Positions 13,826 to 41,380 of a DNA stretch of 41,380 bases are shown here, piece after piece. The stretch's first letter is position 1. Every line of letters starts with the position of its first letter. Made by a program: the position numbers and the translations under genes. This DNA comes from Macrostomum lignano (lineage: Eukaryota), in contig NIVC01004583.1 of the NCBI GenBank assembly GCA_002269645.1, positions 1 through 41,380 of the forward strand, written 5' to 3'. The notes beneath the pieces were generated by a model. It saw only the letters and a program-made list of their open reading frames with translations, did not search any database and was not told the DNA's origin.

Positions 13826-14274
13826 TGAAAAATTTTGTCCCAGAAGCCCCCTCATGCCTTCTACTAGCCGTTAATACACATGTGAATGTTACAGTAACTA
13901 TATTTTTTTACGTTTTAATTACAAAGTTTAGCCTTTCAACAACAACGCTTAATCTGTTTTGCATACTTGTCCTGTTCATTTACTACAATGAACAACTGTA
14001 TCTGCTTGTAACTAACTGTACTTCGAGATTTGTGTGTCGTCTGAAATGAAAGAGTTGATATTTTTAGCGTGAGTTACAAACGCACAAATATTACAAACTC
14101 AATAAAAGTTTACAACCGCAACAAATTCACGGGGCGCTTTCATTAGGCAAAAATTTCACTTTGCTGAAAAGCACTCTCTTTCACTAGGCCGAAACTTCAC
14201 ATTGCCAAAAAACCATTTTAGCAGCCCCTTTCAATACGCCGAACCTTATGGAAGAGCGTGCTCGGCAATGTGAA

Positions 14275-14550
14275 GTTCCTCTGTCCTCTCTACCCTCCTC
14301 TATACCCTCTATCCTCTCTAGCCTCTCCTCTCTACCCTCTCCTCTCTACCCTCTCTTCTCTACCCTCTCTTCTCTCTACCCTCTCTTCTCTCTACCCTCT
14401 CTCTTCTCTAGCCTCTCCTCTCTACCCTCTATCCTCTCTACCTACTTCCTTTTTCTCTTCCTTCTCTCCTCTCCTCCCTCTCTCCCTTCTCTCGTCTCTT
14501 CCCTCTTTTCTCCTCTTGTCTTCTTTCTTATCTCATCTCTCTCTGTCTCT
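14275..14550. repeat. Pyrimidine-rich low-complexity repeat (TCTCTACCC-like)
   Basis: Direct reading. Confidence 0.9.
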
Positions 14551-17037: not shown

Positions 17038-17266
17038 GTGCGAATGCGACAGGTGCTGCTGCGACTGTGCAGAGCAGACGAACTTTACGAACCGCAATTT
17101 AGAGGTAGATCATGTCACATAATTTCAACTTTTTTTGCTTCATTTTTTGTCCCGAAATTTAACAACGTTGTATTTTTATCACAACGCTTCAATTTGCTTT
17201 CCTTGATAGTCTTTGCGAATGCGCTTCTGTGTGCAAGACATTCGGTTTCTGCTTTTGTTCCGTTAA

Positions 17267-17993
17267 CAATAGAAAGACCACGCTATTTTTCCCATGGGGA
17301 AAGACCACGGGGGTATATTGCAAATGCACACAACCCATTTCACGATTTCTCGCAAACCGAATTACCGATTTTCCTAAAAGTCCACCATATGGATCAAACT
17401 TTTCTGCCCTTTCCGACGAACTGACTTTCAAAGTCATCCTACGTCAACATCGTCGAGATATTCAACGATTCTCCTCGGGGTGGCCGCGTGGTGGCACTCT
17501 GTTGAAGGTCCCGAAGGTCGCCTTTATGTCTACAGGTCAGCCTAGAGGGTCACCATCGTCTATTTTATTCACCGATTGTGTCTACTGACTGAATGCTGCA
17601 TGCAGAAGAGGATTCATCCACTTCAGTTTTGGGAACGCAGCCGTCTCTGAGATACCGACGGGTGCTTTTGTTGAAGGTGCCGACGGTCGCCGCCGATGCT
17701 CCAGACGGTGCTGAAGGGGACCCTGGTGCCTTAGATGCTGAGAACAAAGGCCTCACGACTAGTTTGTTGAGCCGACGTGGAAAATTTTTTGCCAATGTTG
17801 GTGATTTTTGCCACAAGGCACCCCGAGGATAATCGTTGAATATCTCGACGATGCCGATTTTTCCTGATTCTCGAAGTTGCTCCATCGAATAGAGCGGAAA
17901 ATTTTCATGGCAATTGGTTGAATATTTTTGGAGATCCAGACAAAGGAAAATGTGTGTATTTGAAATACAGCCCCCCCCCTGGTCTTTCTGCTG
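17267..17993. mobile_element. MITE-like non-autonomous DNA transposon (727 bp) flanked by TTAA
   Basis: TTAA at 17263-66 and 17994-97. Termini are CAATAGAAAGACCA and revcomp CAGCAGAAAGACCA. A second inverted pair sits at 17299-17332/17951-17988, and an internal 35-bp inverted repeat (1 mismatch) at 17448-17482/17819-17853. Confidence 0.8.
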
Positions 17994-19666
17994 TTAAGTG
18001 CCGTTGAGAAGAAAAGAGTAACTGTTTTGAGTGCGATCGGATGTTTTCATAATCTCTGTATTAAGCGGAAGTCATCACGATGCGTCATAATTATTTATTC
18101 CCTTCTTTTTTTCCTCCCCAAACAGCAGCTATATGATTTGTCCGGGACTCAAATTTCATGCTGTCCAGATTTAAGCGGCTTGCCTTATGCTGCGCAAGTT
18201 GAAGTTTTGGCAAACCACACAGTTCTCTCTTTGAATTTTGGATTTTTTATCTAATAATCCTGTTCTCTGACAATGGAAACTGGTTCAGCAGCGCCGGCAG
18301 CGGTGACTTCTTTGTCCGCAGCTGAGTGCGAATGAAGCCGAGTTATACATTTAGATAAGATGCGGCTTACTCATGTAAATTTAATAAAAATTTATCGCAG
18401 AATTTTTTACGCTGGGATTCATTTTTTTGTTTTTTTGAGTGAAATTAATAATTATCGAGATTTAACGAAAGCCGTGATTTTTCCCTTTTACTCTTCAACC
18501 TACTGTAGTGAATAAACTGAGTTTGTGTTTTTTAGTACACTGTCGTTTCTGTAATGGGGTAACTTCAATTTTGCGTAGATTAGTTCGATTATAAACCATT
18601 TAGTAGTGTACTATATATCTAAAACCGAGGTCCTGTTTCACTATCCTGCGCCAACGGTGACTTCTACAGGTGGGAAGCGTCATCTGACGGACCTTGATCG
18701 CATGAGTTGATTTGTTTGGGTTGCGTTTTTTACTTTGCTTTTGTTGTTGCTGTATTTTACTTGATTATTCGAATTGAGCTAGCTTTGTCTAAACTGATAA
18801 TAGTAAGTTGAATTTTAAATAAATTCATTTCAAATGCGGGCGCGAACTCGCCACGAGTGCTCTGATCAGTTATATCTTCTTGATCCCTCAATGCTAATGT
18901 TGTTTGAGAAGCTGTTTTGCAGTCAGGATGCGGAACAAGTACTCATTGAAATGAAATTGATCTGATGCAGCTCGGCAGCACACCGAGATCTTGGCAATCT
19001 GCATCGGAAACTTTCTGAGTTGCTACTGAAGGAAAACGCCGAGTGTAATGTACAGACAGACGACTTTGAGATGACTTTGAGACGAAGTCAATTAGCAATC
19101 GACATAAATCATGAACCATTTTTTTATAATTTATCCTAACTTTATTATTTACAATTTATCGATTTTTCGAGCCCAGAAGGCTGCAGGCTGAAGCTCAGGT
19201 GAAGCAGAATCTGGCACGGGAATAATCCGATTAGATTCACCATGCTCCATGATTCACTCTAGCAGAGCTGCTTCGCTTCGCTGCCTGTGTGAGCCAGCTC
19301 GAGCTGAGACTCACTCGCTAGCAGATTGGCAGCGGGCCGTCACAGCTGGATTGCCCTGGATGAAATCCATCAGCTGCATCCACTGCCGGCTTTGGAGTCA
19401 CTGCTGCTGTAGGTAAAGCCGTTGTTTGTCACCTACCTTGAAGGCATTATTACGATCTGCAAAGCTGATATTTGAGTCATTGCACAGTCATTTGCCGGTC
19501 ATAGTCTGAGCATCGCTTACACCTTGGATTCTGAGCAGTCTGAGCTATTGTTAACTCTTGCCTGTTGACTTGACTTACTTGACTCAGCTGCAGGGCTGTC
19601 CCGGAGGGGACACAGCGGGAAGGCGCGGGCGCCCATTCCGCTAGTCCCTGAACGGCCGACGCGTCG

Positions 19667-22600
19667 CTATGGACGGAGGGTTGGCGCCGCCCAGGGGGGT
19701 CCCCCAGTGTCGCCAGCAGCTATGGTGCTCTCTGGAAAGGAGAGTTCAGCCCTGCGGGTGGCCCGAAGGTAGCGCATGAGCTGATTAAAGTTTTCGGGTT
19801 TGCACGCTTCAGTAATAGATGTGTGTGGCCCGAGGTAAGTGAGTCTGGCCCGCGTGAAGGCGGGACAGATGCTGACGAAATGCTCAGCGGTTTCGTCACC
19901 TGAGTTGCAGAAACTACAGGTGGCGTTGGTGGCGTTGCCCTGCAGGTACTGGTGCCTGGAGAAGCAGCCGTGACCAGAGAGGGTCATGGTGGCAGCCCGG
20001 ATGTCTCTGCGCGAGAGGCGCAAGAGGAGCTTCCGGAGCTGGTGAGAGGGCTGAGGGACAGCGCCTCTGGATTGCCTGCAGGTAGTGCAGTTCGCCCAAG
20101 TCGAGCGATGCTGGGTCCTGATCCACGCTTTGATGCGCGAGTCGATGACACAGCCAGGAATCGGGACAAGGGTTCGGGACCGAGAGAGGAGCCGGAGGCA
20201 CCAACTTTTGCAAGGGTGTCAGCCAACTCATTTCCTCGGATCCCCACATGCCCCGGAACCCACTTAAGGGTAATTTTGTTGGTGGAACCCAACACGTTGA
20301 GGAGTTTGATACAGTCGAGGACTGTAGCAGAGTTGGTGCTGCAGCCACTGATGGCGTGCAAGGCAGCTTGGCTGTCCGAATGGAAAATGATGTTCTTACC
20401 AGTAACGCCAGTGGCGAGAAGCTCTGCAGTGCAGGAGCTGATGGCCAGAACTTCATTTTGGAAAACACTGGAGTTGACCCCAGTGTATTGAGCGTGGGTA
20501 GCGATGACCCTCCCGTTCAGAAAGATTCCAACACCAAAGCCGGTGTTGGCTGACTGCTTAGAACCGTCGGTGTAGCAATGAAGCTCACCAAGGTTCCATT
20601 GGTCATTGATGTTATCGCGCGAGTCGATAGCTACGCAGTAGCGCTGTCTCAGGTTGAGCGTTGAGGCAATGCCATCGGTGAAGACGCGATTGGCCTGACA
20701 CTCGTTGAGAAAGTTGAGGCACAGGTCGCTATGCGGGACAAGGTTCCGCTTAGCAGGTGCTCTCATGTAAATGAATTTGACGCCGGCATCAATTAGACGC
20801 CGCGTCGTTCTAGCCGCCTCACCCCTGACGAAGAGGTCAAGAGGCGGTAGATTAAGGAAGGCCCCCATGCCAGCAAAGGGCGTGGACCTGGTGGCATTGC
20901 AGATGAGCCTACACGCTCTGCCTTGGATCCTGTTGAGCAGGTCTGCATGGCTTTTGACCTGGGTAGCGCTAACCCAGACAACCGAGGCGTACGTAATGGC
21001 AGGTCTAACAACGGAAGTATAGATCCACCAAAGCCGCTTTGGGGATAGACCCCAAGAAGTGCCAAGTGCTCGTCGGAGCTGGGCCAGGATGGCTGAGGCA
21101 CGCTTGGCTTTTGCTTTCACGTGGAAGGACCAGTTGAGCCTGTGGTCAAGTGTGACCCCGAGACATCTGGTCTGGTGCGCGAAGGCAATATCTCTGCCGT
21201 AGAGCTGCAGAGGACGTATGTTCCAGCGTAGTCTGCTGGTAAACATAATGGCAACGGTTTTGGGCTCAGAGAGTTCCAGACCATTGTCATTGGCCCAGGA
21301 TTCTGCTTTGCGGATAAAGCTCTGCATCAGATCCCTGAGCGTGCTGGGAGACGGTCCTGCCACAATGGCCGTGACGTCATCAGCATACCCGACTTTGAAG
21401 ACGGGGTCGGGTCGGGAGTCACTCAGAAGAGCGTCCATGACCAGGTTCCAGAGCGTCGAGGTGAGGACTCCGCCTTGGGGTCCACCCTTACAGACTCTGG
21501 TGGAGGCAGTTTGCCCAAGAAGTTGGGCAGTGACCGTACGGTTGGAGATCATGTACATGATCCACCGTATGAGGGTAGCATGAGCTTTGCGATTTTGAAG
21601 GGCCCTCTGAAACGCTTCAAAGATAACGTTGTCGAAGGCGCCAACAATGTCAAGAAAGAGAGCCAGGGCGTAACCGTCACCCAGTACCGCCCGTTCAATC
21701 TTCTCGACAATCGCATGCAGGGCGCTGTCAGTCGACCTCCCGGTACGGAAGGCGTGCTGATTATTGCTGAGGGGCATCGCTGTCAGCTCGCAGGAGAGCA
21801 GCCGCCAGAGAATAAGCCTCTCAGTGAGCTTAAGCATTGCTGACGTTAAGCTAATAGGCCGGAAGGCCTTGACGCTTTGGTAGTCACCCTTCCCACGTTT
21901 GGGAATAAAGACTACCCGAGCTTCAGTCCAGCATTTGGAAACGTATCCCAGCTGGATAGAGGCCCGCATAAGATTGCGGGTGAGTCTCAGGAACGAGGGT
22001 ATCTTGGCTGCTTCACGAAGGAGAACAGGGTAGATACTATCAGGTCCAGGAGATTTGAAGGGTTTGAAGGTTCTGACCGCACGAGGGATTAGGTCTTCAG
22101 TGACAATGCCCGCCGCTAGGGTGGCTCCATCCATCGAATGGTTGGGCTCCGGTCTAGCAGTAGGTACCCTCGGGAAGAATGTGCTAAGCATATGCTGAAG
22201 CACTTCTTCAGGGTCTTTAGTAAGAGAGCCATCATCTTTTTTGATCATGGCTAATTTGGACATTTTGTCCATTGTAAGGGCCTTGACAAGCCTAGAAGTA
22301 GGTCTGTCTTGATCCAATTCATTGCAGAATTGGCGCTACTTACATTCCTTGGCCTTGCGCACTTCAGATTTGAAATTGCGGGAGGCTTGCCGGAAAAGCT
22401 CCATGTCCTCCGGGTTTCCGGTCTTCATGGCACGGCGATGAAGGCTTTTGGCCTTCCGCCTGAGTTTCCCCAGCTCCGGGTTCCACCACGGCGCCGAGGT
22501 CTTGCCTTTGTAGGCGCGAGCAGGACAAGCCGCTTCGTAGGCTGCAATAATGCAACCTGTCAGCGTCTCAGCCATATGATCCACATCCTCGCAGGTCTCA

Positions 22601-23402
22601 ATCGGTCGTAAGTCCGTGAGTTCCTGCAGGTTCAGATCAAGGGCAGCCTTGTAGGCCGCCCAATCAGTGTTGCGGATATTGCGTCTCCAAGTGATCGGAG
22701 ACTGGGTTTTAGTGTCCGCGATGTTAAAGGCGATAAAGCAGTGGTCGGACAGGGAGGGCTCCTCAGACCAGACTCTCCACTCCTCAACTCTGTCAAAGAG
22801 TCTTGGGTAACGAGTGTGGCGTCGAGGACCTCGGTCCATCTGCCATTATTAAAGGTAGGAGTGCTGCCGCGGTTGCAGAGCATGAGGTTTGTGTTAGAGA
22901 TGAGGGCCAGAAGCTCCTCTCTAGTGTTGGTATCTTTGCTGCCCCAGTGCTTGTGGTGCGCGTTAAGGTCGCCCCCTAAGCACAGCTCAGCGTTCTGGGA
23001 CTCGCAGTACTGCGCAAGGCGCAGTAAACTCTCGGGAGCAGGGTCTCTGTCGCCTGGGATATAAACCGAGGCAACAAGACACGTACGCGGAGAGAAATGA
23101 TTAGATTGGATGACGCAAAGCTCTCCATCAGAGAGATCAGTCCTCAGCCAAGCCTGGAGATGGCTAGCAGCGAGGATAGCCGCTCTAGGGCGGCTGTTCC
23201 CCGGGCCACACACATAAAAATCAGAGTAGCCAGAGGGAATGTTGGGCAACTTACCGTTGCGCATCCAGGGTTCCTGGATCAGGATGAGGCCTGGCCTGTA
23301 CAGCTCAGCAATCTTCATCAGATTTACTGACGCAGATACGCAATGCTGTAAATTAATTTGCAGACAGAATGTCGCTCCTTTGGCAGCGTGGAGCTTAGTC
23401 AT
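19667..23402 (-). pseudogene. LINE ORF2: AP endonuclease, reverse transcriptase, RNase H; 2 frameshifts and 1 nonsense codon
   Basis: QINLQH..LIQEPW..SVYIP..GGDLNAHH..SDH (APE); KSPGPD..RPISL..GGPQGGVL..YADD (RT); YTDGS..QNEV..SDSQAA..WVPGH..NELAD (RNase H). Shifts at ~22800 and ~20180; in-frame TAG at 22336-22338 where Trp is expected. Confidence 0.93.
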
Positions 23403-23425
23403 ACTGTATTAAATGCAATGTCTGG

Positions 23426-24322
23426 CTAGAGCCCAGGGCCATCAAGGAGACTTGGACAACAGATCGTCCTCGTCCCAGGCCGCTGGGGCTTGACTGGGAG
23501 ATGGGAGTTGGTCGACGTCCATGGCCTCCTCACCCCCACCGGCCCCCCAGCAGAGTCCTCAGGCTCCGATGACAGGATGGAGGAAGCTTCCTCCCCTGCA
23601 TCTTTACCTTCAGACCCCACCAGGGTGGCCGAGGAGAGCTCGGATTCCGAAGACCCGGCCTCGTCCTCAACTCCTTCTCCGACTGGCAGGTTTGGTTCCC
23701 GGGGCTTGGCCGGAGCCGTTACCGCGGTCGCCGAACTGCTGCTAGCAGAGGGGCGAGATGCAGCTTTGGCTTTGGGATCGGCTTGCGCCTTTCCTTGGGC
23801 CTTAGACTGCGCCCCGCTCTTGCCGGAGATGCCGGGGTTGGCAGTAGCCTTCCCTTTGGCAGACTTTCCTCGGCGCATCTTGAGCTTGAGGGCACCCAGC
23901 TGGAAAGAGGATCCATTAGGGTACCGACTCGCCCAAGTGCTGGAAAGGCCGAGGACAATTGAGTTGCCCGTCTCCCCCCTGCGGACTCGGCGGTGATACA
24001 CCAGTCCACTAGCAGGGAGGTCGGGGTTCAGACGCAGTAGGACCCGGCGGATAACGTCTGGTCCAGCTGCGGTGCTCTTAGCAGGGACGAAAACCACATA
24101 GGGTATCGTCTTTGGACGCTGGCCCTCGCGAAGAAAAAGAGCTCCGCCAAGGTCAGCATCCAAGGAGATCTTGCCTGTTTCTGCAGATCCCAATATTTCA
24201 TTAAAATCATTCAGATTGCTTTCCGTTTCGCAAATGTTCGAAGTGTCAAATTGTTTGTTATGTTTATGTTTCAATTCTGCACTGTGGAGTGTCTCTGCAG
24301 AAACGTTGGAAGGAACGCTCAC
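23426..24322 (-). CDS. LINE ORF1 (gag-like, DUF4780-type domain); probable frameshift in a G-run near 23545
   Basis: Positioned directly upstream of ORF2. The YVVFVP..IRRVLLRLNPDL..IVLGL..FQLGALKLK domain is followed by a low-complexity tail. A shifted frame gives an acidic end AWDEDDLLSKSP* (stop 23442-23444). Confidence 0.7.
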   Translation of the reverse strand: MSVPSNVSAETLHSAELKHKHNKQFDTSNICETESNLNDFNEILGSAETGKISLDADLGGALFLREGQRPKTIPYVVFVPAKSTAAGPDVIRRVLLRLNPDLPASGLVYHRRVRRGETGNSIVLGLSSTWASRYPNGSSFQLGALKLKMRRGKSAKGKATANPGISGKSGAQSKAQGKAQADPKAKAASRPSASSSSATAVTAPAKPREPNLPVGEGVEDEAGSSESELSSATLVGSEGKDAGEEASSILSSEPEDSAGGPVGVRRPWTSTNSHLPVKPQRPGTRTICCPSLLDGPGL

Positions 24323-24434: not shown

Positions 24435-25218
24435 CAGGGGCGTCGCCAACGGGGGGACAGGGGGGACAGGTCCCCTCCAGTAAAAGATCTGGGGGGACAT
24501 ACCAATGCTTTGTCCCCCTCACCCCCACCTTGTGGCCCGTTGTGAAAATCAATAACTTTTGGTGCCTGTGGCGCTAAAATGAGTGCCTGCGGCGCTAAAA
24601 TGGTGCCTGTGGCGCTAAAATGAGTGCCTGTGGCGCTAAAATGAGTGCCTGCGGCGCTAAAATGGTGCCTATGGCGCTAAAATGAGTGCCTGCGGCGCTA
24701 AAATGGTGGTGTGGCGCTAAAATGAGTGCTTGCGGCGCTGAAATGAGTGCCTGTGGCGCTGAAATGAGTGCCTGTGGCGCTGAAATGAGTGCCTGTGGTG
24801 CTGAAATGAGTGCCTGCGGCGCTAAAATGAGTGCCTGCGGCGCTAAAATGAGTGCCTGCGGCGCTGAAATGAGTGCCTGCGGTGCTGAAATGAGTGCCTG
24901 CGGCGCTAAAATGGTGGTGTGGCGCTAAAATGAGTGCTTGCGGCGCTGAAATGAGTGCCTGTGGCCTGAAATGAGTGCCTGCGGCGCTGAAATGAGTGCC
25001 TGTGGCGCTGAAATGAGTGCCTGCGGCGCTAAAATGAGTGCCTGCGGCGCTAAAATGAGTGCCTGCGGCGCTAAAATGAGTGCCTGCAGTGCTATAATGA
25101 GTGCTGAAAACACCGATTATGAAAATAATGTACATGTAGGAATTTCGTCGCGTACATGTATATCTAGAATTCTTGGCTTTGTCCCCCCCCCACCATAAAA
25201 TCCGTGGCGACGCTTTCG
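24435..25218. mobile_element. hAT-type non-autonomous element (784 bp) with internal 21-bp minisatellite
   Basis: Left TIR CAGGGGCGTCGCCAACGG; right TIR CCGTGGCGACGC(tttcg), degenerate at the tip. 8-bp flanks are TCTTCTCT and TATTCTCT (7/8). The internal array spans ~24560-25108, unit GGCGCTRAAATGAGTGCCTGY. Confidence 0.75.
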
Positions 25219-26583: not shown

Positions 26584-29500
26584 ATGTTGAGCAAGTGGCT
26601 GATTCCTGTACTCTGCTGGATGTCGGTGAGGTGAGCGGAGAAATCCTTTACTCACTCCTCACTGCTAACATTTCAGACTTTTGGGACTTTGTAGTCTTCA
26701 CTATTTCCTTTTTCCTACTTTATTTCTCCTATATCTCCACTCTCCCTCTCGCCAGTCCCACTCTACCTCTCGCCAGTCCCACTCACCTCTCGCCAGTCCC
26801 ACTCTACTCCTCTCCACTCCCACTTTACCTCTCGCCAGTCCCACTCTACCCCTCTCCACTCCCACTCTACCTCTCGCCAGTCCCACTCTACCCCTCTCCA
26901 CTCCCACTCTACCTCTCGCCAGTCCCACTCTACCCCTCTCCACTCCCACTCTACCTCTCTCCACTCCCACTCTAGTTATCCGAAATGCGCATGGGCTGGC
27001 TTTGAGACCGTCAACCCCGATTCGCACCGCAGCTCAGGGGAGCCGCGGCCACCCCCGCGCAGCCGTCTCGACGCAGCCGCGGTCTCCGCCAACGCCTCCC
27101 AGCTGGTTCGCATCTCCCGGGTGCTCGACCAGATGCTCAACAGCAGCCGGTACGACAGCAACCTGCGGCCTGGGCTGGAGTTCAAGCTTAACAACCTGAC
27201 TGGGGAAAGAGAGGTTATCGGTGAGCTGCTCCTCTGGATCAACGCCTAGCACTCGTTCAGTTACTGGCCAAGCACTAATGGTAGTGTGATCAGCAGCACA
27301 CAGACTGGGTGTCAATGCCTGCCTTGATGTATTATTTTATTAAACTTGCAGAGAGGGGGAGAGGGAGAAAGGGAGAGGAGAGGGAGTGAGAGATAGAGAG
27401 GGGAGAGGGGAGAGGAGGAAAAAAGGAGAGAGAAGAGAGGGAGAGAGGATGAGGGGAGAGGGCAAGGAGAAGACAGGGAGAGAGGGGAGAGGGCAAGGAG
27501 AAGACAGGGAGAGAGGGGAGAGGGCAAGGAGAAGACAGGGAGAGGGCAAGGAGAAGACAGGGAGAGAGGGGAGAGGGCAAGGAGAAGACAGGGAGAGGGC
27601 AAGGAGAAGACAGGGAGAGAGGGGAGAGGGCAAGGAGAAGACAGGGAGAGGGCAAGGAGAAGACAGGGAGAGAGGGGAGAGGGCAAGGAGAAGACAGGGA
27701 GAGAGGGGAGAGGGCAAGGAGAAGACAGGGAGAGAGGGGAGAGGGCAAGGAGAAGACAGGGAGAGAGGGGAGAGGGAAAGGAGAAGACAGGGAGAGAGGG
27801 GAGAGGGCAAGGAGAAGACAGGGAGAGAGGGGAGAGGGCAAGGAGAAGACAGGGAGAGAGGGGAGAGGGCAAGGAGAAGACAGGGAGAGAGGGGAGAGGG
27901 CAAGGAGAAGACAGGGAGAGACGGGAGAGGGCAAGGAGAAGACAGGGAGAGAGGGGAGAGGGAAAGGAGAAGACAGGGAGAGAGGGGAGAGGGAAAGGAG
28001 AAGACAGGGAGAGAGGGGAGAGGGCAAGGAGAAGACAGGGAGAGGGCAAGGAGAAGACAGGGAGAGAGGGGAGAGGGCAAGGAGAAGACAGGGAGAGGGC
28101 AAGGAGAAGACAGGGAGAGAGGGGAGAGGGAAAGGAGAAGACAGGGAGAGAGGGAGAGGGAAAGGAGAAGACAGGGAGAGAGGGGAGAGGGCAAGGAGAA
28201 GACAGGGAGAGGGCAAGGAGAAGACAGGGAGAGAGGGGAGAGGGCAAGGAGAAGACAGGGAGAGAGGGGAGAGGGAAAGGAGAAGAGAGGGAGAGAGGGG
28301 AGAGGGAAAGGAGAAGAGAGGGAGAGAGGGAGAGACATGGTGAGCAAAGGAAACAGCTGATGCAGCACAGAAGCAAGCATGCAGGCCCACACACAAATTT
28401 GGCAGCAAAATGCATTCCAAGCTATCAGGCATAAAGCCGCAGGGCCTGCAATGCATTGAACGAGCATTTAGCAGACACAAAGGAAAAGTGCCTGCACTGC
28501 TGGAGAGTTTCTGGTGTTGACCCTGCCAAGTCTAGGCTGACTTAAGCAGGATTAAAAAATTCAAGCCATTCCTGCTCTCTGCGTTGACTGCGAAGATAGC
28601 TTCTGCATAGATATTATCATAGATATTTTCTGGTTAAACTGCTTTTCCTCCAGTCCGAGTGTACTTTTGCTTAATCCAAGAAAATTTCTCAAGCAACCGC
28701 TTCAGCAGCTCTGCATGTTTAAAGGAAATAAATGGCTCTTCAACAATGAGAAATTCGAATAGAAGTGAAATGTAAAAATGCTGGATAAGTTTTGAAGCGG
28801 TTATTTGCGGTGCGGCTCGCATCGCAGGGCATGAAGCCGGATTGCCGGGTTGAGGTGAGCCGAAAGCGGATTAGCAAATCCCATTGGCAAACCGGGAGTT
28901 GTTTATCCCCAGGCCCAGGAGACTCAGATGGGGACTGGCTGCTCACAGTGAGTTTGGAAAACCACCTCAACTAAGACCGACCCGTGTCGTTCATCATTTT
29001 CAACTCGGTGTCAAAATCCCAGAGATTGGGATCGCGGGCCCGACAGTATGGCGGGCGAAGTTGGCGCTGAGATGCCGCTCCGCTGCTCAAGTAGAGGCAC
29101 AGCAGAGCGAAGAGTCAGAAAGTAAGACTGGAGCTTCGTTCTTGAATGTAAACTTTACTGCTCAGGCTGCGAGCTACGAGCTTTCGCTCTGATCCCGAAA
29201 AATTTGTGAAGCGAGCCCGGGGTCGGCTCGGAAATAACTTATGGAAATTTTAGCGGTGAAGTCTTGTTGGCTGAGACATGGGCGAGTGTGCGTGGGAATA
29301 ATCTGGCTGGGGCTTAGCGGGACAACAGACTCAAAATGAGTCACAGTTTAATTGTGATTAACAGGCCACTCCATGCTTGAATTAATTTTGTCAGCCTTTC
29401 TTGGCAAGTGGAGTTACTAAAGTACATAAAGGACGTAACATGAGTAACTACTTTTATATGACAGATCACATAAGGTGTCTTCGCACAAACTTTTAATAAC

Positions 29501-29789
29501 ACAGAGGTTAAAGCAATACTATTAATCCACTTTCTCTTCCCTCCAGATGACGACCCGGTGGCGGTGTCAGTGAACATGCTCATCAAAAACCTCGGACCGA
29601 TTGACGAGGAGAAAATGGTATTCAAATAATTATCGCTCCTAATACTGTGTGTTATCCAACACTCTTAGTGTAAGATTCTAAAGCTGGAAAATAGATCCAG
29701 AGTGATACGAGAGAGACAGACAGACAGGCAGACAGAAAGACAGACAGACAGACAGACAGACATACAGACAGACAGACAGACAGACAGAC

Positions 29790-29866
<77 letters not shown>

Positions 29867-32800
29867 CTCTGATAGACAGACAGACAGACAGACTAGAAGA
29901 GATACAAATACAGGAGGTTGTCATTGAAGCGCCGCTCCCAATGGCCAGATGTACGCCATGGAGATCTACTTCCGGCAGTGCTGGATGGACAGCCGGCTCA
30001 AATTCGATCCGGAAATTGCGCAGCAGGACGAGATCAAAGTCAGCATCAGCATCCTGAGCCGCATCTGGCGGCCGGACACGTACTTTTTCAATGGACGCGG
30101 CTCTCAGCTGCACGAGCTGACAACGCCGAACAAACTGCTTCGCATTCAGGCGGACGGCACCGTGTTCTTCTCCATGCGGTATAAATAAAATTGGCCTGCG
30201 GTTGTCGTGCAATTCACACTATGAGGGCCAACCCCAAGGGTACAGAGAGTGTTTGACGATGTCGCCGAAGCCGTTGCGTCAGGTTGGGGCCCTCCTGCGA
30301 ATAGTTATTTCAAACCACTATCAAAGTAGATCTGCATCTTCTTGCACAAGCTCCCAAACAAATGTGACCGCACACTGAATCAAACGAAGGGTTCGTGGCG
30401 CGATAGAGAGAAGCGTTTACCGCTGAGCTGATCCGTCCTTTTTGGCAGTGGTTGACGCGTCGTACAGAATATCGTAATTTCGAAATTGAAATTGTCGAAA
30501 AGCCTTAATAACAATTTCGATAGTTCAATACTCGAAAATTTCTGGAATGTGAAAAAAAATTGGAATTAGGATACCAATTTTTTGTTTGACCGGATCAGAT
30601 TACGGAACTCTCCGTTGTTTTGTACATCAGTCGTGTGATTTGATGGCTGACTTAAAGGCGTTTGGAACGAGTTTCAAACAGCAGATATATTTCAACGCTA
30701 ATGCTTGCAGGCTCACGGTAAAGGCGGTTTGCTACATGGACTTCAGGAAATTCCCTGTTGACCGGCAGACATGTCCGCTGTTCATTGGCAGCTGTGAGTC
30801 AGGAACTCAGTTTGGGATTTGGTACAAAGACCTCTGATAATCTGATGCCTAGCTGGCTTCAACTAAAAACGCATTCCAGTCGCGTACGACTCGCACAACT
30901 TGGTGTACCTGTGGTGGGAGGAGGCCAGAGCCGGCCCGCACCTGCATTACATTCCCGACACGGTGGTCAATTCAACTAACAAAAATCTGGGCGTAGAGGT
31001 GACCGCCATGGCGCAGTTTCTATTCCGTCAGGAGAGGGTGCTGTTCTCGCATCAGCATACCCGGTTAGGGAAAGGTGAGTCTGGCAAAAACCCTCTGCAT
31101 CCTGAATGACATAAGTCACCTCTGGAGTTTGATAATCCACTCAGCCATGTCTTCTTGGGTAGCTTGAAAAAATATCAACAAGATTGAATCCCCATTGACC
31201 ATTTTTTAAACCAAGGAGTTTAATCCGTTTATACTGTGTTTCCCAACCTGTGTAAGTTCAGCTGATGGGGCGGTCCCAACTTTGCATTAGTTGAACTAAT
31301 TTTACTGCTTAAACAAAAAGCTGGACACGATAGAGGAAACGATACTTTTCAGAGTATCGAAACCTGCTCAGCATGACCATTCCGCTGGAGAGGATGATCG
31401 GATTCTATGTACTGCAGATCTACCTGCCCTCCTACATGACTGTGGCGATCTCCTGGGTTAGCTTCTGGATCAACAGGGAGGCGACCCCGGCTCGTGTGAC
31501 TCTCTGTGCGTTTCTCAGCCTTCATTGTGTACTTTAGCATTCTTTGCTTTCGAAGTGTGCTGAGTTGCTTGCAAATTGATTTTTGATTGATTTTTGTGTG
31601 TTTGTGAATTAGTGAGAATCTCAATTAGTGTGCTTATGGATTTGTGTGCCTGTGAATTGGTGTGCTTGTGGATTGGTGTGCTTGTGGATTGGTGTGCTTG
31701 TGGATTGGTGTGCTTGTGGATTAGTGTGCTTGTGGATTGGTGTGCCTGTGGATTGGTGTGCTTTGGGATTGGTGTGCTTTGGGATTGGTGTGCTTGTGGA
31801 TTAGTGTGCTTGTGGATTGGTGTGCTTGTGGATTAGTGTGCTTGTGGATTGGTGTGCTTGTGGATTGGTGTGCTTGTGAGTTGGCTATTTTGGTGAGGTG
31901 TTGGTGCTAGGGTTAGTGTTAATCGGTGATAGATTAAGCATGAGTACATGATGAGGAATGTAAGGTTGCTTAGTGGTTTGTTATTAGTAATAAAGAGATG
32001 TATTTGCAGGAGATTGAAACTTTATGTTTTCAAGTTTTAACCCTCAATTTTTTAACTCTAACCCTTTCTCCGACTAAAACCGGTTGACAAGCTTATTGTT
32101 CACCTATAATTCATCGGAACCCCGCAGCAATCACAACGCTGCTCACAAGCGTCACCATCACGCTGACTGGCCGCATCGGCCTGCCGAAGGTGTCCTACGC
32201 CACCGCTCTGGACGTCTTCCTGCTGGTCTGCTTCTTCTTCGTGTTCTCCGCCCTGCTGGAGTACGCGGGAGTGAACTATTTCACCAAGACTGGCAATGTG
32301 GAAATTCCCAGGAGACCCCAGGTGCGCGGCTTAGCGGTGCTCAACTGTGTAATCAAAATAATCAGCCGCGCGCGGATAAGTAGCTTTACATCTCTCCTTT
32401 ATACACAATTATTTCGGCTCCCGTTGTAGCTTGGGAAAGTATATCTCCAAGGAGGTTAATTTTTATTTGTTATTTGTACAAGCGTATTATATATGATTAT
32501 TGATTTCAAATACCTCAGCCCTAGGCATAATCTCAAAGCTAGATGCTGGAGTATTAACGTCTATAGATCAGTACAATAAACTGGCAGGTGCTACCTGAAG
32601 CAACAAGTTTTACCTACATGTTAATGCCTGTTAGTAGTAGCCGTTAGCCAGCGCTCTTATGTTCCAGCGGCCCAGGCTCGATTCTAAGCGCAGTCAAATT
32701 GTAATATTATGGATTGAAATCTTGCTAACTGCTAAATTGGAATGTTCGCTTGGGTCTGCTTGGGTCTGACGCCATTGACGCACACAGCCCCCACCCTGTC

Positions 32801-33291
32801 TCAAGTAGACAATGTCTGTTAAAAATGCAGCAAATATTTCACATTTATTGTAAGTCAAAATTCCCTACGCTGCCCAGGCTTCTATCGACTCCGCCGAGCC
32901 CGAAGCGACCACTCTGAAGAATGCGGGCGCTCAGTTGATTGAGGAAGACGACTCGCAGACACGGAACAGACTGAATCGCCGGCCACACTCGCAAAGAGAC
33001 AGCAATCAATGGAGACCGAACTTCTCCAACGACGGACACGTCGAAGAAGCCGCTGGCCGACCAACCGGCGTTGGCGGCGGCGACTCCTGCCCGAGCATGT
33101 TCCTGCACTGCCTGCGCGGAGACAGGAAGTACATGCTGCTGAAGGAGAGCCGTAGAACATCCGGTCCCAACTCGGAGTCCTGTATCGATCGGGCGTCTCG
33201 ATTCATATTTCCAGCCTCGTTCCTGGCCGTGAATGTGCTGTACTGGCTGGCTCTCTTCTTGGGCGACGAGTTTCGAGTGGAGCCGGAGTGA
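26584..33291 (+). CDS. Cys-loop ligand-gated chloride channel subunit, GABA-A alpha/Grd-like; 9 exons, 543 aa
   Basis: Exons 26584-26630, 26976-27220, 29547-29617, 29949-30178, 30711-30793, 30880-31074, 31353-31505, 32128-32321 and 32878-33291. All introns are GT-AG and phase-compatible; total 1632 nt. Features: signal peptide, YD..LRP, WRPDTYF, Cys-loop [16 protein letters not shown]1, PAR-M2, [16 protein letters not shown] and M4 IDRASR. Confidence 0.95.
26735..26973. repeat. Pyrimidine-rich 21-bp minisatellite in intron 1
   Basis: Alternating units CCCACTCTACCTCTCGCCAGT and CCCACTCTACCCCTCTCCACT. Confidence 0.92.
27352..28337. repeat. Purine-rich 31/22-bp minisatellite in intron 2
   Basis: Unit GGGCAAGGAGAAGACAGGGAGA(GAGGGGAGA), ~1 kb. 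Confidence 0.97.
29712..29893. repeat. (GACA)n microsatellite in intron 3
   Basis: Direct reading. Confidence 0.97.
31625..31884. repeat. 16-bp minisatellite (TTGTGGATTGGTGTGC)n in intron 7
   Basis: Direct reading. Confidence 0.95.
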
Positions 33292-34250
33292 TGAAGGCAA
33301 CAGCCAGCAGAGACAAAATCGTACAAAAAAGTTTGCCTGAGAAACATTTCATAAAGTTGGAAACCTGCTTTAATGAAAAATACAGTTTTACAGATGCTTT
33401 GGAACTTGTTACTTATTTACTTAAGCAGCCTGTTTATAAGACAAGCTGCTCGAGCTTAACATGCTCAATAAACTTCCGTCAAATTTATTCTGAGTTCTAC
33501 TCAAGTGTAGCAACATCTGCTGCAGTTGAAGTCTTCTCAGACATACGAGCGTACGAATATTTTCATATTGCACCCTTGGTTCCCAAATATTGCACTGCAT
33601 TTTTATGTGATGCACGCAAAATTTTGGTTATGGTCCAAATTTTCAACTTCCCAAAGAGTTACAATTTTATATGTACTTAACTTCAAAAGCAATCCATCAG
33701 GTGCAAAATGAAACACTAGGGCAAACAGAGAAAAATTAGCCTTTCGTTACTGAGTTCGATTAGGAAAAGCTCTTCCTTCCAGGTATGGATCTCACACAGT
33801 CTCGTCTCTACGCACGGAGTTACTCAGATCATTATCTATATAACTAGGTACATTAACCGGCATTCTTCTCCCCATAGGATAGAAAAGAAACATATGACAT
33901 CCCGAAGTACTGAGAGATCTACGAAAATCTGGCACCCCGCGTCGCCCTCTCTGGTGTTTTTGATAGACCAACTAGTCAATAGGTCGTCTCTTGCTGCGAA
34001 CGTTTTGGTGCTCGCGAATAAGCCTAGAAGTAATACGGGTCTGCAGCGCTAACCAGCCCGAGTGAAGACTCAAATGAAGGAGGCCTGCCAGTCTCAGAGC
34101 TCATTAAGCGCGCAGCTTTCTGTCATGACTTACAGCATCTGATTGATATTTTTTGTCCTGAAATGTCCTGACACCTTAGACTCTGAAACATTGTGGGCAC
34201 TCACACGCGTGCGCCGGCCAGTAAGAGCCAGCTTACTTGAGTATTGCACC

Positions 34251-34280
34251 CAGGGACTACTAAGTATTTAGTAGTCCCTG
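34251..34280. mobile_element. 30-bp TIR-only hAT-type mini-element
   Basis: CAGGGACTACTAA-GTAT-TTAGTAGTCCCTG (perfect 13-bp inverted repeat) with a perfect 8-bp TSD ATTGCACC at 34243-50 and 34281-88. Confidence 0.85.
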
Positions 34281-35589
34281 ATTGCACCCTGTACAAACTA
34301 TCTTAGTACGTAGACTAGGGATTCAAGGATACAATGAAAGCGTTCCAGTAAAACTAAAATCTGATACCTACTGTTAAATACGTTTGCTACTTTGGCAAAA
34401 ATCGTGTCGGACAAGGTGTGAAAGAGCGCCTCTTCTGTCACCTCTCGCGTCGCTCGCATGCACTTCCGGTCGATCTCTTTATTGAGTTATTGAGTTACTG
34501 ACTGCAGCTATTGAACACATATAATTTCGAGTTGTCCGACAACTTTTTTGGGGTCCATTTTGTAACTTTACTTGCTGTATCGCAGCACGTGGTACTCCAA
34601 CGTTACCTACTCTTCCTCTTAGGGGTTCTTGCAAGTCTGAGGTCATTAAAGATCAATCAAGGCTATGTCCAGCAAGGTGAAAATACTAATAAAAGTAGTA
34701 ATTACAGCGAGGTTCTGGCCTTAAATTGGTCGTGAAAGGGCCCATAGGCTATCTTGCAGATTTATTAAGACTAATTATCATACCAGCTACTATGTTGTAA
34801 GTTAGCCACAGTGCCATATACACGGCAACATCGTTTCCATTTTCAAATAGTTGCTTGATTGAATAACTTACTGACCACTGTTTGTCCATTTGGCTTATTG
34901 CGACCCTCCTATAAGGCTTAGACGTAACTACTCAATTGAGCGGAAAAGATCAAGATGAAGCAATTGGTCGAATTTTAGCTTAACTTCACTCGCAACTTCT
35001 TAAATTTTTATGCGCTAGTAAAGTCATTGAAAAGACGCTTGCCTGCCTTGCGAATACCAAGCAATCAAGCAAAGTGCAATATAAAATCAAACTACTGAAA
35101 GAGAGGCCAGATAAAGAGTGCTCCTAATTAAGCACGCTTAAATGGCCTCTCAAAACCAACAAATCAGATATTGAGGCTGTCTGTGGCCTGGAAAATTCGC
35201 GACCAAATAGACCAGACTGCGGACTCTTTTTGCACAGCTGTCTCCGGGCGAACTGGGCGTCAGAAAAGCATTAGCTAATTGACTCGAGCGAGCCTCGGGT
35301 TTCCCGTGACAGAGCGCAAACTGCAGGACTCAAATGAGTCTGCTCCCTGGCTATCCATTTTCTTATTTCCTGAGACTTTAACTACTGACCAAGAGATTTT
35401 ATACGACGGCGGTGGCTACAGACTTGATGCTGCAGGCATGCGTTTGCGGATTCTTGATTACATTGTCCGCTAACTACGAATGTGTTATTATTTGGTCCAT
35501 TATTAGTAAAAATTCTGCATTTGCAAACCGGATCGTTTCTTATGGCTTAGCGTCGTGACCCCAGACCCACCGGCACCGTGCCTGGATTC

Positions 35590-36030
35590 CGGCTCGCAGT
35601 TCCATCGCAGGGCGGGGCCCTGATTGGACTCAACCGCAGGGACATCATGGACTCTCTCGGGTAATGGCTGTTTTGCCAGGCATCGCCACCTGCAGGGAAA
35701 AATCCGCAGTGAGGAATGCCCTTTCTGCCTCTCCGGTGTCGAGAATGCGGAGCACTTCATCTGTGAATGCCCTGCCTTTACTCAGGTCAGGCTCACCTAT
35801 CACGGCCCCAGGGACAACTAAACACTCGTTTAGGACACTATGACACTAGAGTGCTTTAGTTGTCCCTGCTCGGCCCAAACTCGGACCTCTCCGACGTTTT
35901 CAGGCCCGAGAATCTCTGCCAGCTCGTCCGCTACCTAAGGGCTATCGGGCGAGCGACAATCCACCTCCTGGAGGGGGACCGCGCTGCGGACACCGGCACC
36001 ACCGGAACTCTTTGCGCGACACCGCAGCAC
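35590..36030 (+). pseudogene. 5'-truncated 3' fragment of a LOA/Lian-like LINE related to the element at 19565-24430
   Basis: [51 protein letters not shown] parallels the C-terminus of ORF2 at 19667-20023. It is interrupted by the 60-bp element. Confidence 0.85.
35809..35868. mobile_element. 60-bp hAT-type mini-element inserted in the LINE fragment
   Basis: TIRs CAGGGACAACTAAACACTC and GAGTGCTTTAGTTGTCCCTG; 8-bp flanks CACGGCCC and CTCGGCCC (7/8). Removing it plus one flank restores the LINE frame (Y-L/H-GPNSDL). Confidence 0.85.
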
Positions 36031-37790
36031 CAGCTGCCTGTTGTCGCCAGGGGTCAGCGAAATGGGCAGCAACGTTTAGCGCCTGTTCTTGCTTACTCTT
36101 AGTGGATAACTGATTTGATTTGATAGCTCGCTGCCAACACGTTTCCTGAGATTCACTAAGCCTAGTTTTAGGAGATAAAAGAACGAGGGCGGGAATCCAA
36201 AGAAAAGTAAGCTGTTCCAATAAAAGATAGTTTAACACCCGGATTCCCCTGCTATTCCTTATGAAGTACAATTTCGTAGTACAATTTATGAATGACTCCC
36301 TTTGATACTGGCCCAAGACTGTTCATCAACAAGCTAAAAAATTATCATATCATCTTCTCATTTACCTGAAAGTTAAACTTTGACGATCCCGATCTTGAAT
36401 TAAGGAAAGGAAACTAAACAAACTTATCCTTCCCCACGAGCGCTACGCCTCTTTACATTATACTCGTATAAAAGCTTTAAATATATTACTGACATTTTCT
36501 GAAACTAAGACTACTACCAGTAGCATAAATAGAAATTCGCGCTACACTATATTATTTCTTAATCCCTGGTAGAACTTGACAGCAAGATTAGTGAGAGAGT
36601 ATACTCGTATTAGTAGCCGGCCATATAGCTTAAATTATGACAGTACCGATGAGATAAAGTAATTGTAGTTTCCAAATTGATGGTCTTTAAAGCGCCCTGG
36701 AGGCTCAGAAACAGGCAATTGTCTCGAAAATCCCACTGCATTTACATTCAGACTGCAGCATCCGTGTAGCTCTGCAAATTGAGAAAGCTCAGCTACACAG
36801 GGTTATTGTAAGAACAGACTATCCAGGTTAAAAAACTCTTTAGAGGTAGCTGACGTAGAGCTTCATTTCTACGTTGCCTACGTTACCAACCTCCTGTAGA
36901 ATAGATGTATTGCATATTTAAACAACGAAAACGCTTTCAATGCAGAAAACTGCATGATTGACAAAGCAGCTCCAGACGATTTGTGTTTGTATTTCGAAAA
37001 TTAAGCACAGCAGTGGCCCCTTTTTAAAGTAAACATTTTTCCTTTTTCATGAATAAGGAATAAGGGCTCTGCTTAAGGCATTTTTTAAACGAGCTAGTTT
37101 TTAAAAAAAATAAAAATAATTTTCAAATTTGTGAATATGTAAATTCCTGAGTCAAGGGTACTGTACAGTATCAGCACAGGAACTGACTGCACGCAGCTCT
37201 GCTGTTGCTTAGGCTTTTATGGCACATTATACATGTAAAAATTTCGAGAATGAGAATACAAAAATTGTATAGATTTGATTACTGTGCCAGTACAGCACTG
37301 CACAGCTGCAGCTTGTGTGCCTAAGTACTTTGTTGGTAGATTAAAAGCAATTGCTGTAATGAAAAATGATCATTTCGAGAACTGTAAGCAAAAATCAGTG
37401 AAGGAATTTTATGCGAAATTGATAAAGTTTTTTTTCAAATTGAAAGCAATCTTGAAGTATATATTAAGTAAAAACAAGCGGATTTAATAAAAGGTATAAT
37501 TATAACAAATTTATTAATCTTTATAAAAATTTGCGCCAGAAAATAGATTTACAATGTAAATTTGTAATTTTTTAGTGTTATCAATATATTAGGATTAGTT
37601 TCACCTAAATAGTAAGTATTTTTTCGCTGTCAAGGTAAAACATCACATCGCTATTCAAACGAAAGCAAGCAAATCATTAAGTATAATAGCTAGTACATAC
37701 GGGTCGGCACAAAATCAATCTTCGCCACCATAATTATTTAAGTTTTTTAATTCTTAAGCTTCAAGGCTTTCTTTTTCTTTACTTGCGATA

Positions 37791-40129
37791 ATGTCTGCGA
37801 GACCAACACAGTGCATCTGTCAAATCTGCAATTGCGGGTATGCAAAACGTCATTTTTCTTTTCTTAATGTTTTCGACTTTCAAGAAATTTTTGCTGAAAA
37901 AAGAATTTAGTAAAAGTAAAATATCGTTTTACTGAACTTTCGAAATTCTTATACTATCCCTTAGATTATTTAATTCCAAATAGGTTATTTGACTCCCATT
38001 TTCCTCTACATTTCTGTGCTGTTTTCTAAGTAATTTATGGTTTGACATACATTCATTGGCCTGGCACGACTCTTCAAAATTTATCAGAACTAATGATTTG
38101 AAATTTTACAAAACCATATAAATTTAACTGTTGAAAATGTTTCAATTTTAGCATTTAAATTTATAATAGACAGAAAAAAATACACTTAAATTAATCATTT
38201 CTCACTTCTGTCTGATTTAATACTTAAAAACAAGGTTTTATTTATTATTAAACGAATTTATAAGCCACTAATTTGTTTCTTGTTTGCATTCTTTATTTGA
38301 TTTTAATAGCTACGCCAAATACAAATTAAAATTAAATGGTTAAAACTTTATATGAACAAATTTTTTCTGGTCACTTTATCAGCCGGCATCGCTGCAAGCT
38401 GCACCCGAATCGCCCGATCCGCGACGGCCCCTGCCAGCTGTCCGAGTACACCAACAAGTTCATCCCGCATGCCATCGTGCCGGTCGGCAGCTTCAAGCCG
38501 ACAGTCGAGCGGCCGGCAGCGAAGGCCCTCTGTCCGATAAGACCACCCACCGGGTGGACTTCGTGCCGCACCCGCTGGACAGGCCGAAGCAGCACCAGGC
38601 TGAGCAATACCGGCCGCCCTCCGGCCAGTTCGATGGCATCACCATGTACAGCAAGGAGTACACGGAGAAGCGGGCAGACCGAGCCGTGCCCGCTAAGCGC
38701 GAAGTGAAACGCGGCGTTGCTGGCGAATTCCGCGGCGAGCCGACGTACAAGCACGACTACCGGAAGTGGGACATGCCCAAGCTGGAGCGGAGCCGCACCA
38801 ACCCGCAGTGGGAGCCGTCCAAGACTCCGTTCGGCGGCCTGCCTACCTACACCACCGACTATGTGGCCCACCCGGGCAGGTGAGAAGGGCTGATTGGCGA
38901 TTAGGTTGGTTCTAAATAAAATAATTTAGCTTGCAGCAATCGATCATGTGATAATGAACAGACAAATCCACTTTTACCTGAACCAGAGTATAATCGACTT
39001 ATTAATGACATGCTGAACTATCAGCGATCATAATTCAGGTTGGTTTAAAATATCCCTTCTATATGGACACTATTTTTATATTTAGAATGTTTTTTCTTGG
39101 CATTGAAAGTTGCTTCTGCCTCACTCGATCACTAAATATTTAATCGATTGACGGTTCAAATAGGCTTTCTGCCGATCACATTCAAGTCCAAACTCAACAG
39201 TGAACAGAAATCACTTTAAATGCATTACTTCAGTAGCTTTTCTGGCTTATAATTTTTACTCATTTTGATTTTAAAACATGATTAGCACGAATATGGTACT
39301 GGATAAGCTTAAGCACCGGACTGGGGCCTGAAGTACCGTGGATTGTATGATAACTCAACAGTTACCGGTAGAATGGGACCCAAGAATTCTACAGGATCAC
39401 ACGATCAGGCAGACTTGAAGGAATATTTTAGAGCTCGTTTACAACACGGTTTCTCAGTCAACTTCTGCCCTGATACGGCTAGGCGAGACACGAACTGTAG
39501 GTTGACATGAAATCCCGTTTTATTCAACTTTACCCGGCAAGTTATTGATTTCAGGCGGTTTGGTCTCGTGTCTTATTTTTGGGGTTCATTCCGGAGCTTA
39601 AGTTGGCATTCCAATATTGAGCTGTAACTCAGATAAAAATGTTGGTTTCTCACAGACCGTCCACCAGCTGCAAACCGAACGAGGTCGCTCGCTTGTCGTC
39701 CGCCCCGCTGGAGAACCAGACCGACTACCGGCAGAGCTTTGTGCCGCATCCGCTCGAGCGGCGCAAGGAGAAAGAGCGCCAGGTCTGGGCGCGCCCATCG
39801 GCGCCATTCGATGGCCTGAGCACATTCACGCGCGACTTCACCCCGAAATCGGCGATGGTCCGCAGCTCGATGAAGCCGGACGCTACCGCGTTTGCCTCCA
39901 ACGCGCCGTTCAAAGACGACACAACGCACCGACTTGACTTCAAGCCGTGGGAGCTGCAGCGTCACGCCGTGCATAAAGCCGAGCCCTACGTGCCCCCGGA
40001 GGGTCACGTGGATGGCACCACGACCTACGTCAAGGACTACCCAGCCCACAAGGTCGTTAGGGAGACCTACACTAGGAGGCCGGAGCGCGGTCTACCTAGC
40101 GGAGAATTCAATGACGCCACAGATTACAA
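37791..40129 (+). CDS. SAXO: SAXO/FAM154-family stabilizer of axonemal microtubules, 5' part (exons 37791-37837, 38383-38879, 39656-40129); 1-nt frameshift ~38517; continues beyond the window
   Basis: N-terminal CICQICNCGRHRC followed by periodic Mn-like motifs TTHRVDFVPH, TMYSKEY, PTYKHDYRKW, PTYTTDY, TDYRQSFVPH, STFTRDF, TTHRLDFKPW and TTYVKDY. GT-AG junctions are phase-compatible. The paralogue number cannot be assigned. Confidence 0.88.
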
Positions 40130-41380
40130 GTGAGTTTTCCTCACCTTTGACTCATCTTTCCTCACCTTTAATCCTTTTTTACACCAGATGTAAACCCTTA
40201 CGGTATAAACCCACATTTTAAAGTCTTTCGGTCTCTTGGACGTTTCTTGCGACTTAAACAGAAGCCTTAGTTTCGGTAATTTTTCCGAGCCTATAACCAA
40301 GGATACGAAAACTCCATTACGTCGCTAGGGCAATTTTTAGGTTTGTTTTTCTTGCTTCTCACCCAATCAGCTTCATGGGAAGTGGAGCTGTACTAAAAAA
40401 AATCAACCAATTCATTGCAACTGTACTGAGAGGCATCCATATTGTTACTTGTTTGTAATGCAAGCAGGGGTTGCAATCTGGCAGGGCGAGAGTGAGACTT
40501 GGGGAGAGGCAGGCAGCAGAACCCATGGGTTGCAAGAGCTTTAGCCATACGCAGTATATCCTAGCAAACTTTAGCCGCAGGCAGCTGAGCAACTGGCAAA
40601 AAAGAAGAATGGCTTTCATTGTTGACTGTCGCCCGGCAGAACTGAGCTGGTCCAGTGGGTGGGGGAGAGAGAAGGGAGAACGGAGAGTAAAGATGCGGGA
40701 GAGAGAAGAGAGGCCGTGCCTGGCTACTCATCACACCGAGGCTTTAGAAAATCATTTTCTATTCAAAGAAGCGAGGCAATCAAGACGGATCAAAACCTCG
40801 CGTCTGCTCTCTCTGCTCACTGCTCAGCCGACCGTCTCAGTTCTTTTCGCTGTCTAACGCATTGCCAATGAGTACCCGACAATTCGAGTCTCTCACGCCA
40901 CTCTGGCCCAACCACCTTGCTAATGGTCTCACCACTTAAAAACGAATACTGAATATCTAACTGTAGAAAGTGGCTCCGACATTGTCTAGAAAAGTTTTGG
41001 CATACCACTTAATTAGCTTAGTTTAGTGAATACCGTGTTGCAGGAGACGAGTAAATATATACTATTATATTTCTGAATTCGCCTACTTATAGAAAGAAGT
41101 GTAAGGGAGACGAATAGCCTGTAGAGTGCCCGTGATGTCTTTACGAGCTATTGTGCTTCTGAGGGCAGACAACAAGCTTTTTAAGCCCTATGACATAAAA
41201 TTGGGGGCCCAAGTATTGAAATGCTAGTGTTGATAGCGACCAAATATTGACACCCTAAAGGGCCCATTTTGATAATAAACGTATCGGAACTCTTCAATGC
41301 ATTAATAGTAAAAAGTGTCGTTCTAGCACTTCGTGCAACGTTCGGACATCCACGGACGCAAGTCGTATTTTTATATTACA

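Follow-up and report, generated by a model that had tools for sequence, protein, structure and literature searches.

A transposon-derived 30-bp palindrome in the genome of Macrostomum lignano, probably a stub formed in place

Several described systems resemble the very short elements considered here. Non-autonomous elements and MITEs of the hAT superfamily, such as maize Ds1, Drosophila Mar and the human MER1-type, combine 8-bp target site duplications (TSDs) with short terminal inverted repeats (TIRs) starting with 5'-CAGGG, have no coding capacity and insert into other repeats; they are usually 100–600 bp long and contain subterminal sequence. The general rule for hAT TIRs is a 5'-YARNG start, and duplications of 8 bp are also made by P and several other superfamilies. 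The hAT transposases dissected so far depend on long ends, namely about 220 terminal bp on each side for Hermes in cells and 200 and 150 bp for Tol2; the preferred hAT target is nTnnnnAn (PMC10368747). Cleavage by hAT transposases produces hairpins on the flanking DNA and leaves no transposon end sequence behind (PMC5499845). A different architecture is known for MADE1, the Hsmar1-derived human MITE of 80 bp, which consists of two 37-bp TIRs plus 6 bp (PMC1784062). It belongs to Tc1/mariner, duplicates TA, retains complete TIRs, forms a stable hairpin and is present in thousands of copies. Footprints of Drosophila P elements preserve an intact 8-bp TSD together with short, near-equal pieces of the TIRs (no more than 17 nt), sometimes with filler. 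P-element transposase makes a staggered cut with 17-nt extensions (PMC10983969). Finally, in internally deleted derivatives (Ac to Ds, P to KP, or mariner “miniaturisation”) the ends and the TSD are kept and the interior is lost with a short junction; internal deletion via microhomology or repair is a documented source of short non-autonomous elements (PMC3814204). Such derivatives normally retain enough of each end to move.

The window analysed here is a stretch of 41,380 nucleotides from the flatworm M. lignano, and it contains two related elements that are shorter than the usual hAT MITEs, 30 and 60 bp. Their components, and the repeat into which the longer of them is inserted, are as follows.

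34243–34250, no strand assigned: left TSD copy of the 30-bp unit, ATTGCACC, identical to 34281–34288
34251–34263, plus strand: left TIR remnant, CAGGGACTACTAA, 13 bp, 12 of which agree with the terminus of the 60-bp element
34264–34267, no strand assigned: centre of the 30-bp unit, GTAT, 4 bp, its last T assigned to the right arm by comparison of both elements
34268–34280, minus strand: right TIR remnant, TTAGTAGTCCCTG, 13 bp (14 bp with position 34267)
34281–34288, no strand assigned: right TSD copy of the 30-bp unit, ATTGCACC
35617–36074, plus strand: decayed 3' fragment of a LINE ORF2 (CCHC zinc-knuckle region), target of the 60-bp insertion
35801–35808, no strand assigned: left TSD of the 60-bp element, CACGGCCC, which differs from the ancestral CTCGGCCC by one substitution
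35809–35868, plus strand: 60-bp sister element, TIRs of about 20 bp flanking a 21-bp centre
35869–35876, no strand assigned: right TSD of the 60-bp element, CTCGGCCC

The 30-bp palindrome with its flanking repeats is an exact and non-random structure. An earlier note on this DNA had described it as two 13-bp TIRs with a 4-bp spacer and a perfect 8-bp TSD, and this description holds to the letter at 34243–34288, where the arms are complementary in 13 of 13 positions and the flanking repeats identical in 8 of 8. The direct repeat may also be read as 9 bp long, with a C next after each copy; the 8-bp reading was adopted because the ends are then symmetric and because this length is also seen in the 60-bp element and at its empty sites. 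In the output of a repeat-finding program the palindrome was longer, 19 nt at 89%, for the sole reason that the self-complementary TGCA is part of the duplicated target. As single-stranded DNA the entire 46-nt unit folds with an energy of −16 kcal/mol (z = −9). A scan blind to the family, which looked for perfect stems of at least 10 bp with a span of up to 600 and 8-bp flanks matching in at least 7 of 8 positions, returned from the window exactly two loci, the 30-bp and the 60-bp elements, against a mean expectation of 0.005 per window in 200 dinucleotide shuffles. Likewise, the two-end pattern CAGGGACNACTAA-N(4–34)-TTAGTNGTCCCTG gave 2 matches in the window versus 0 in 100 shuffles. With no more than one mismatch the terminal 13-mer occurs in only four places, which are both arms of the 30-bp unit and both arms of the 60-bp unit, and matches with three mismatches are at chance level in the window. 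The 30-bp element is not known to match the PacBio, Nanopore or Tn5 (Nextera) adapters.

The unit is located in unique non-coding sequence about 960 bp downstream of the stop codon of a Cys-loop (GABA-receptor-like) gene, which runs on the plus strand from about 26584 to the stop at 33291 and whose exons have 96–100% identity to a UniRef protein of M. lignano (P0121). Self-BLAST of 32000–37500 against the window revealed no paralogue of its flanks. No Rfam family was registered at E ≤ 1 in 33300–36500, hence none over the unit, and no tRNA gene was found around it by the tRNA scan. On the right side of the unit, about 120 bp away, there is an inverted repeat of 19 nt with 84% identity (CAAAAATCGTGTCGGACAA / TTGTCCGACAACTTTTTTG, 34396–34414 / 34532–34550), which may be another small element or may have arisen by chance. 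The introns of the receptor gene carry tandem arrays at 27351–28335, 29710–29893 and 31624–31878, one more (26737–26974) lies between the first two matched receptor exons, and an array at 24562–25104 is situated upstream of the gene; in the order of their positions, the repeat types of the five arrays are a 21-bp unit in 26 copies, 21/42-bp units, purine-rich 31/62-bp units over about 1 kb, (AGAC)46 and a 16-bp unit in 16 copies.

The 60-bp element is a true insertion, and its family inserts with an 8-bp duplication. Its sequence starts with CAGGGACAACTAAACACTCG and ends with GAGTGCTTTAGTTGTCCCTG; in both arms the ends match the 13-mer of the 30-bp unit in 12 of 13 positions, and in the TIRs a perfect stretch of 14 bp (CAGGGACAACTAAA) is followed by a 1-nt indel and by CACTC/GAGTG. 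The flanks match in 7 of 8 positions, the left copy having since mutated from T to A. The element splits the C-terminal zinc-knuckle region of the decayed ORF2 on the plus strand, and deletion of the 60 bp together with one 8-bp flank copy gives one continuous ORF2 frame (...ECPAFTQVRLTYHGP up to the junction), collinear with the C-termini of the related LINE proteins P0002 and P0008. In two external sequences, L002 (Logan run ERR14788467) and L003 (JGI 3300038379), the left flank is aligned up to position 35808 and the right flank from position 35869, and these flank alignments overlap by exactly 8 bp, at 5693–5700 (CTCGGCCC) in the former and at 2243–2250 (CTCGGACC) in the latter. A second LINE of the window also contains the target site in single copy, CTCGGGCC. 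The joined flanks are thus collinear with three LINE copies, each with a single 8-bp target, and it is these single-copy targets together with the restored reading frame that identify the element as a genuine insertion. The suggestion of the earlier note that a related 60-bp element points to a family is confirmed by the empty sites and by the likeness of the ends.

The second LINE itself, at 19700–24322 on the minus strand, is near full length and encodes endonuclease, reverse transcriptase and RNase H in several split frames, its pieces having 95–100% identity to P0105 and 79–98% to the M. lignano protein P0003. The empty form of the target site lies in its C-terminal region.

A cut-and-paste transposon family with CAGGGACWACTAA(A) ends and 8-bp TSDs therefore exists in M. 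lignano; its termini are CAGGGACWACTAA ... TTAGTWGTCCCTG, and the 30-bp unit, with its own TSD, is transposon-derived and belongs to the same family as the 60-bp element. Within 41 kb the family has two copies, related but different, and the 30-bp form is represented by one of them only. Both are short and non-coding and have TIRs and a TSD, which are among the operational traits of a MITE. According to the searches made so far the family is apparently undescribed: a full-text literature search for its end sequences returned unrelated primers only, and the M. lignano genome papers and supplement make no mention of hAT or MITE families. The two-end pattern had no match in IMG/VR and a single one, unrelated, in JGI metagenome contigs, both being collections without the M. 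lignano genome. This single match (L001, JGI contig Ga0214921_10107225) was tried as a relative and rejected as a chance similarity, for its arms are 29 bp long, it occurs twice in an AT-rich, prokaryote-looking contig, and only the core CAGGGACCACTA is common to both. The palindromes of L001, with copies at 17–74 and 1555–1608 and arms of about 29 bp starting with GCCCTTCGACRGGCTCAGGGACCACTA, represent a repeated hairpin family of their own that has a 12-mer in common with the flatworm element by chance.

The superfamily can be named provisionally only, as hAT-like. CAGGG is present at both tips of both elements, in agreement with 5'-YARNG, and together with the 8-bp TSD it fits hAT, of which the earlier note called both traits hallmarks; the superfamily as such is not established by these traits, since duplications of this length occur in P and other superfamilies too. 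The family here shares with hAT MITEs the lack of coding capacity and the insertion into other repeats. It differs from them in its copy sizes of 60 and 30 bp, in that no hAT transposase partner was identified (among the window ORFs of at least 120 aa, nine of which were scanned against Pfam, none is evidently transposase-like), and in its two target sites, ATTGCACC and the ancestral CTCGGCCC, which have T at position 2 and C at position 7 and so lie outside nTnnnnAn, as far as two sites can tell. The 4 bp between the arms leave the 30-bp copy no space for a subterminal transposase-binding sequence. In architecture the 60-bp copy (about 20 + 21 + 20) is closest to MADE1, and the 30-bp unit resembles MADE1 in being a near-perfect palindrome of two TIRs and a few bases; it differs in its 8-bp TSD and in that its TIRs are partial, with 13–14 of about 20 bp per side. 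The 60-bp copy, whose insertion is validated, already stands at the lower size limit of MITEs, and one may ask with how little DNA the transposase of the family can work.

Comparison of the two copies bears on the origin of the shorter one. With the 60-bp element as a template, the 30-bp copy retains the outer 13 bp (left) and 14 bp (right) of TIRs of about 20 bp, for the last T of GTAT belongs to the right arm, as judged by the CAGGGACAACTAAA end of the longer copy. The remaining 3-bp centre, GTA, has no match in the 60-bp element, and the inner 6–7 bp, or a third, of each TIR are absent along with all internal sequence. Arms of 13 and 14 bp separated by an unmatched GTA make up the pattern expected of a deletion junction with filler. 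One more difference concerns position 8, which is T in both arms of the 30-bp unit and A in both arms of the 60-bp element, the arms within each element matching perfectly. Such a concerted difference points either way, to distinct subfamilies or to arms copied from one another.

Of the alternatives formulated in the earlier note, a mobile unit or a longer element with a deletion, the second is favoured by this anatomy, in which 13–14 bp of TIRs of about 20 bp flank a filler of 3–4 bp. On balance we lean towards the view that 34251–34280 is a stub formed in place, by imprecise excision or repair or by deletion of a hairpin centre, and that it is immobile. A longer member of the family would have inserted at ATTGCACC, about 960 bp downstream of the receptor gene, and duplicated this target; it would have had TIRs of about 20 bp and a length no smaller than that of the 60-bp copy. 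Its interior and the inner 6–7 bp of each TIR would later have been lost in place, so that only 13 bp on the left, 14 bp on the right and the 3-bp GTA filler would remain. The likeliest route of such loss would be faulty repair of a transposase-induced break, either by interrupted gap repair or by end joining with added filler; another route would be cleavage of an extruded hairpin at its tip, followed by rejoining of the ends. The product would no longer be excisable, as the inner repeat and any subterminal sequence are lost and the tips are only 30 bp apart, and would hence persist. The greater length of the parent, the route of deletion, the present immobility of the stub and the hAT assignment are what we infer; as to the parent, none of the sequences covered here revealed a longer member of the family.

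The in-place stub is favoured by the deletion-with-filler junction located inside the TIR and by the long end requirements of the dissected hAT transposases, as well as by the distance between the tips, by the accumulation to be expected of non-excisable stubs and by the documented origin of other short elements from internal deletion (PMC3814204). On a stiff duplex, two tips separated by only 30 bp would not easily come together in one synaptic complex. Non-excisable stubs should pile up and excisable copies should vanish, which would fit the presence of two tiny and no long copies in 41 kb. Internally deleted derivatives of known transposons normally keep enough end to move, in contrast to the 30-bp unit, which is trimmed into the TIR itself. 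Some observations speak against a stub. Both copies of the window are very short and symmetric, as would also be the case if the family normally moved in the form of short palindromes, and the concerted difference at position 8 has to be accounted for; furthermore, near-equal remnants of 13 and 14 bp are a mild coincidence if both ends were deleted independently. Perfect TIRs and a perfect TSD indicate a young event, of either kind. Should the unit be no more than a stub, DNA transposon activity would have left it as an ordinary by-product. Even so, it is a useful marker of a previously undescribed family with CAGGGACWACTAA ends and 8-bp TSDs in a model organism of regeneration, and it would show that old insertion sites are marked by very short remnants which standard repeat finders miss.

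According to the next reading, the 30-bp unit is mobile as such and represents an ultra-minimal MITE of two 13-bp TIRs and a 4-bp spacer, moved in trans by a transposase encoded in the genome. The intact TIRs (13/13) and TSD (8/8), as after a recent insertion, agree with this, and so do the proven insertion of a second very short family member, the tiny and symmetric form of both copies in the window without any longer relative, and the TIR-spacer-TIR precedent of MADE1 (PMC1784062). The concerted difference at position 8 suits palindromes spreading as units, and it hints that the arms were mutually copied or co-selected, as in a self-propagating palindrome. Against mobility stands the absence of the inner 6–7 bp of the TIR that the 60-bp copy possesses; in addition, the hAT transposases studied so far require 150–220 bp per end (PMC10368747), and the 30-bp form occurs once in the sequence available and has no related match in the IMG/VR and JGI collections, which are devoid of the M. 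lignano genome. The stiffness of the duplex would make synapsis of the two tips difficult as well. We regard a mobile 30-bp unit as unlikely, and a transposition-competent palindrome with many copies in M. lignano, each with a different 8-bp TSD, as quite unlikely. If it were true, that is, if the 30-bp palindrome were mobile and multi-copy, it would be the smallest eukaryotic cut-and-paste element known. Its transposase would need only 13 bp per end and would have to pair tips 30 bp apart, for example through pairing of ends in trans or with an extruded hairpin as its substrate. A mobile 30-bp form would challenge the current view of how the ends of eukaryotic cut-and-paste elements are recognised and synapsed.

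A further possibility, which appears rather improbable to us, is a P-like family, or one of another superfamily with 8-bp TSDs, in which case the 30 bp would represent a canonical footprint of excision with 17 + 17 − 4 = 30. The transposase would then cut about 17 nt inside each end, the end pieces would stay on the donor flanks and end joining would fuse them. The 17-nt staggered cut of P-element transposase (PMC10983969) provides a precedent, and in the 30-bp unit the TSD is kept and the TIR pieces amount to 13 and 14 nt, not exceeding 17; this symmetry looks as if the enzyme had set the positions of the cuts. P elements likewise have 8-bp TSDs and start with CA, and neither of the two target sites fits the hAT consensus nTnnnnAn. 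The arithmetic itself has no weight, however, since any 30-mer can be divided as 17 + 17 − 4, and positions 14–17 read GTAT / ATAC in the 30-bp copy versus ACAC / AGCA in the 60-bp copy. Besides, the CAGGG start fits the YARNG of hAT and differs from the CATGATG of the P element, and neither a P/THAP9-type nor any other transposase is linked to the family ends.

Two more origins were considered and rejected. A classical hAT excision footprint would hold palindromes of the flanks and not transposon ends (PMC5499845). The junction of an excised circle would have the tips abutting, but in the 30-bp unit they face outward. As to a chance palindrome, or a functional hairpin (an RNA gene or a regulatory element) unrelated to transposons, its probability is negligible and this origin is effectively refuted: the hairpin is very stable and lies downstream of a gene, possibly in its 3' UTR, but about 0.005 such structures are expected per window, the arms share 12 of 13 positions with the termini of the proven 60-bp insertion, which lies 1.5 kb away, the unit is enclosed by a perfect 8-bp direct repeat, and neither Rfam nor the tRNA scan returned anything there. 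In preference to all these readings we retain the stub formed in place.

Other features of the window are the following. The sole other perfect inverted repeat with a short spacer and arms of at least 13 bp is found at 14193–14277 (AACTTCACATTGCC ... GGCAATGTGAAGTT, with 57 bp between them); no 8-bp repeat flanks it, and it has no relation to the CAGGGAC family. A likely non-autonomous element of the piggyBac type occupies 17263–17997, with TTAA on each side, ends CAATAGAAAGACCA / TGGTCTTTCTGCTG and subterminal inverted repeats of 90 nt with 73% identity (17393–17482 / 17819–17908). The segment 1776–12815 carries a Maverick/Polinton-like gene set, in which an adenovirus-type cysteine protease (PF00770) is encoded at 5908–6282 and an ORF resembling a double-jelly-roll capsid protein, just under the cut-off for PF21738, lies at 10643–11929; the long ORFs at 2573–5762 have no Pfam match and resemble, by eye, a protein-primed family-B DNA polymerase. 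Host exons encode a WSC domain (PF01822) at 16259–16846 and a SAXO1/2 “stabilizer of axonemal microtubules” (PF05217) at 39639–40133.
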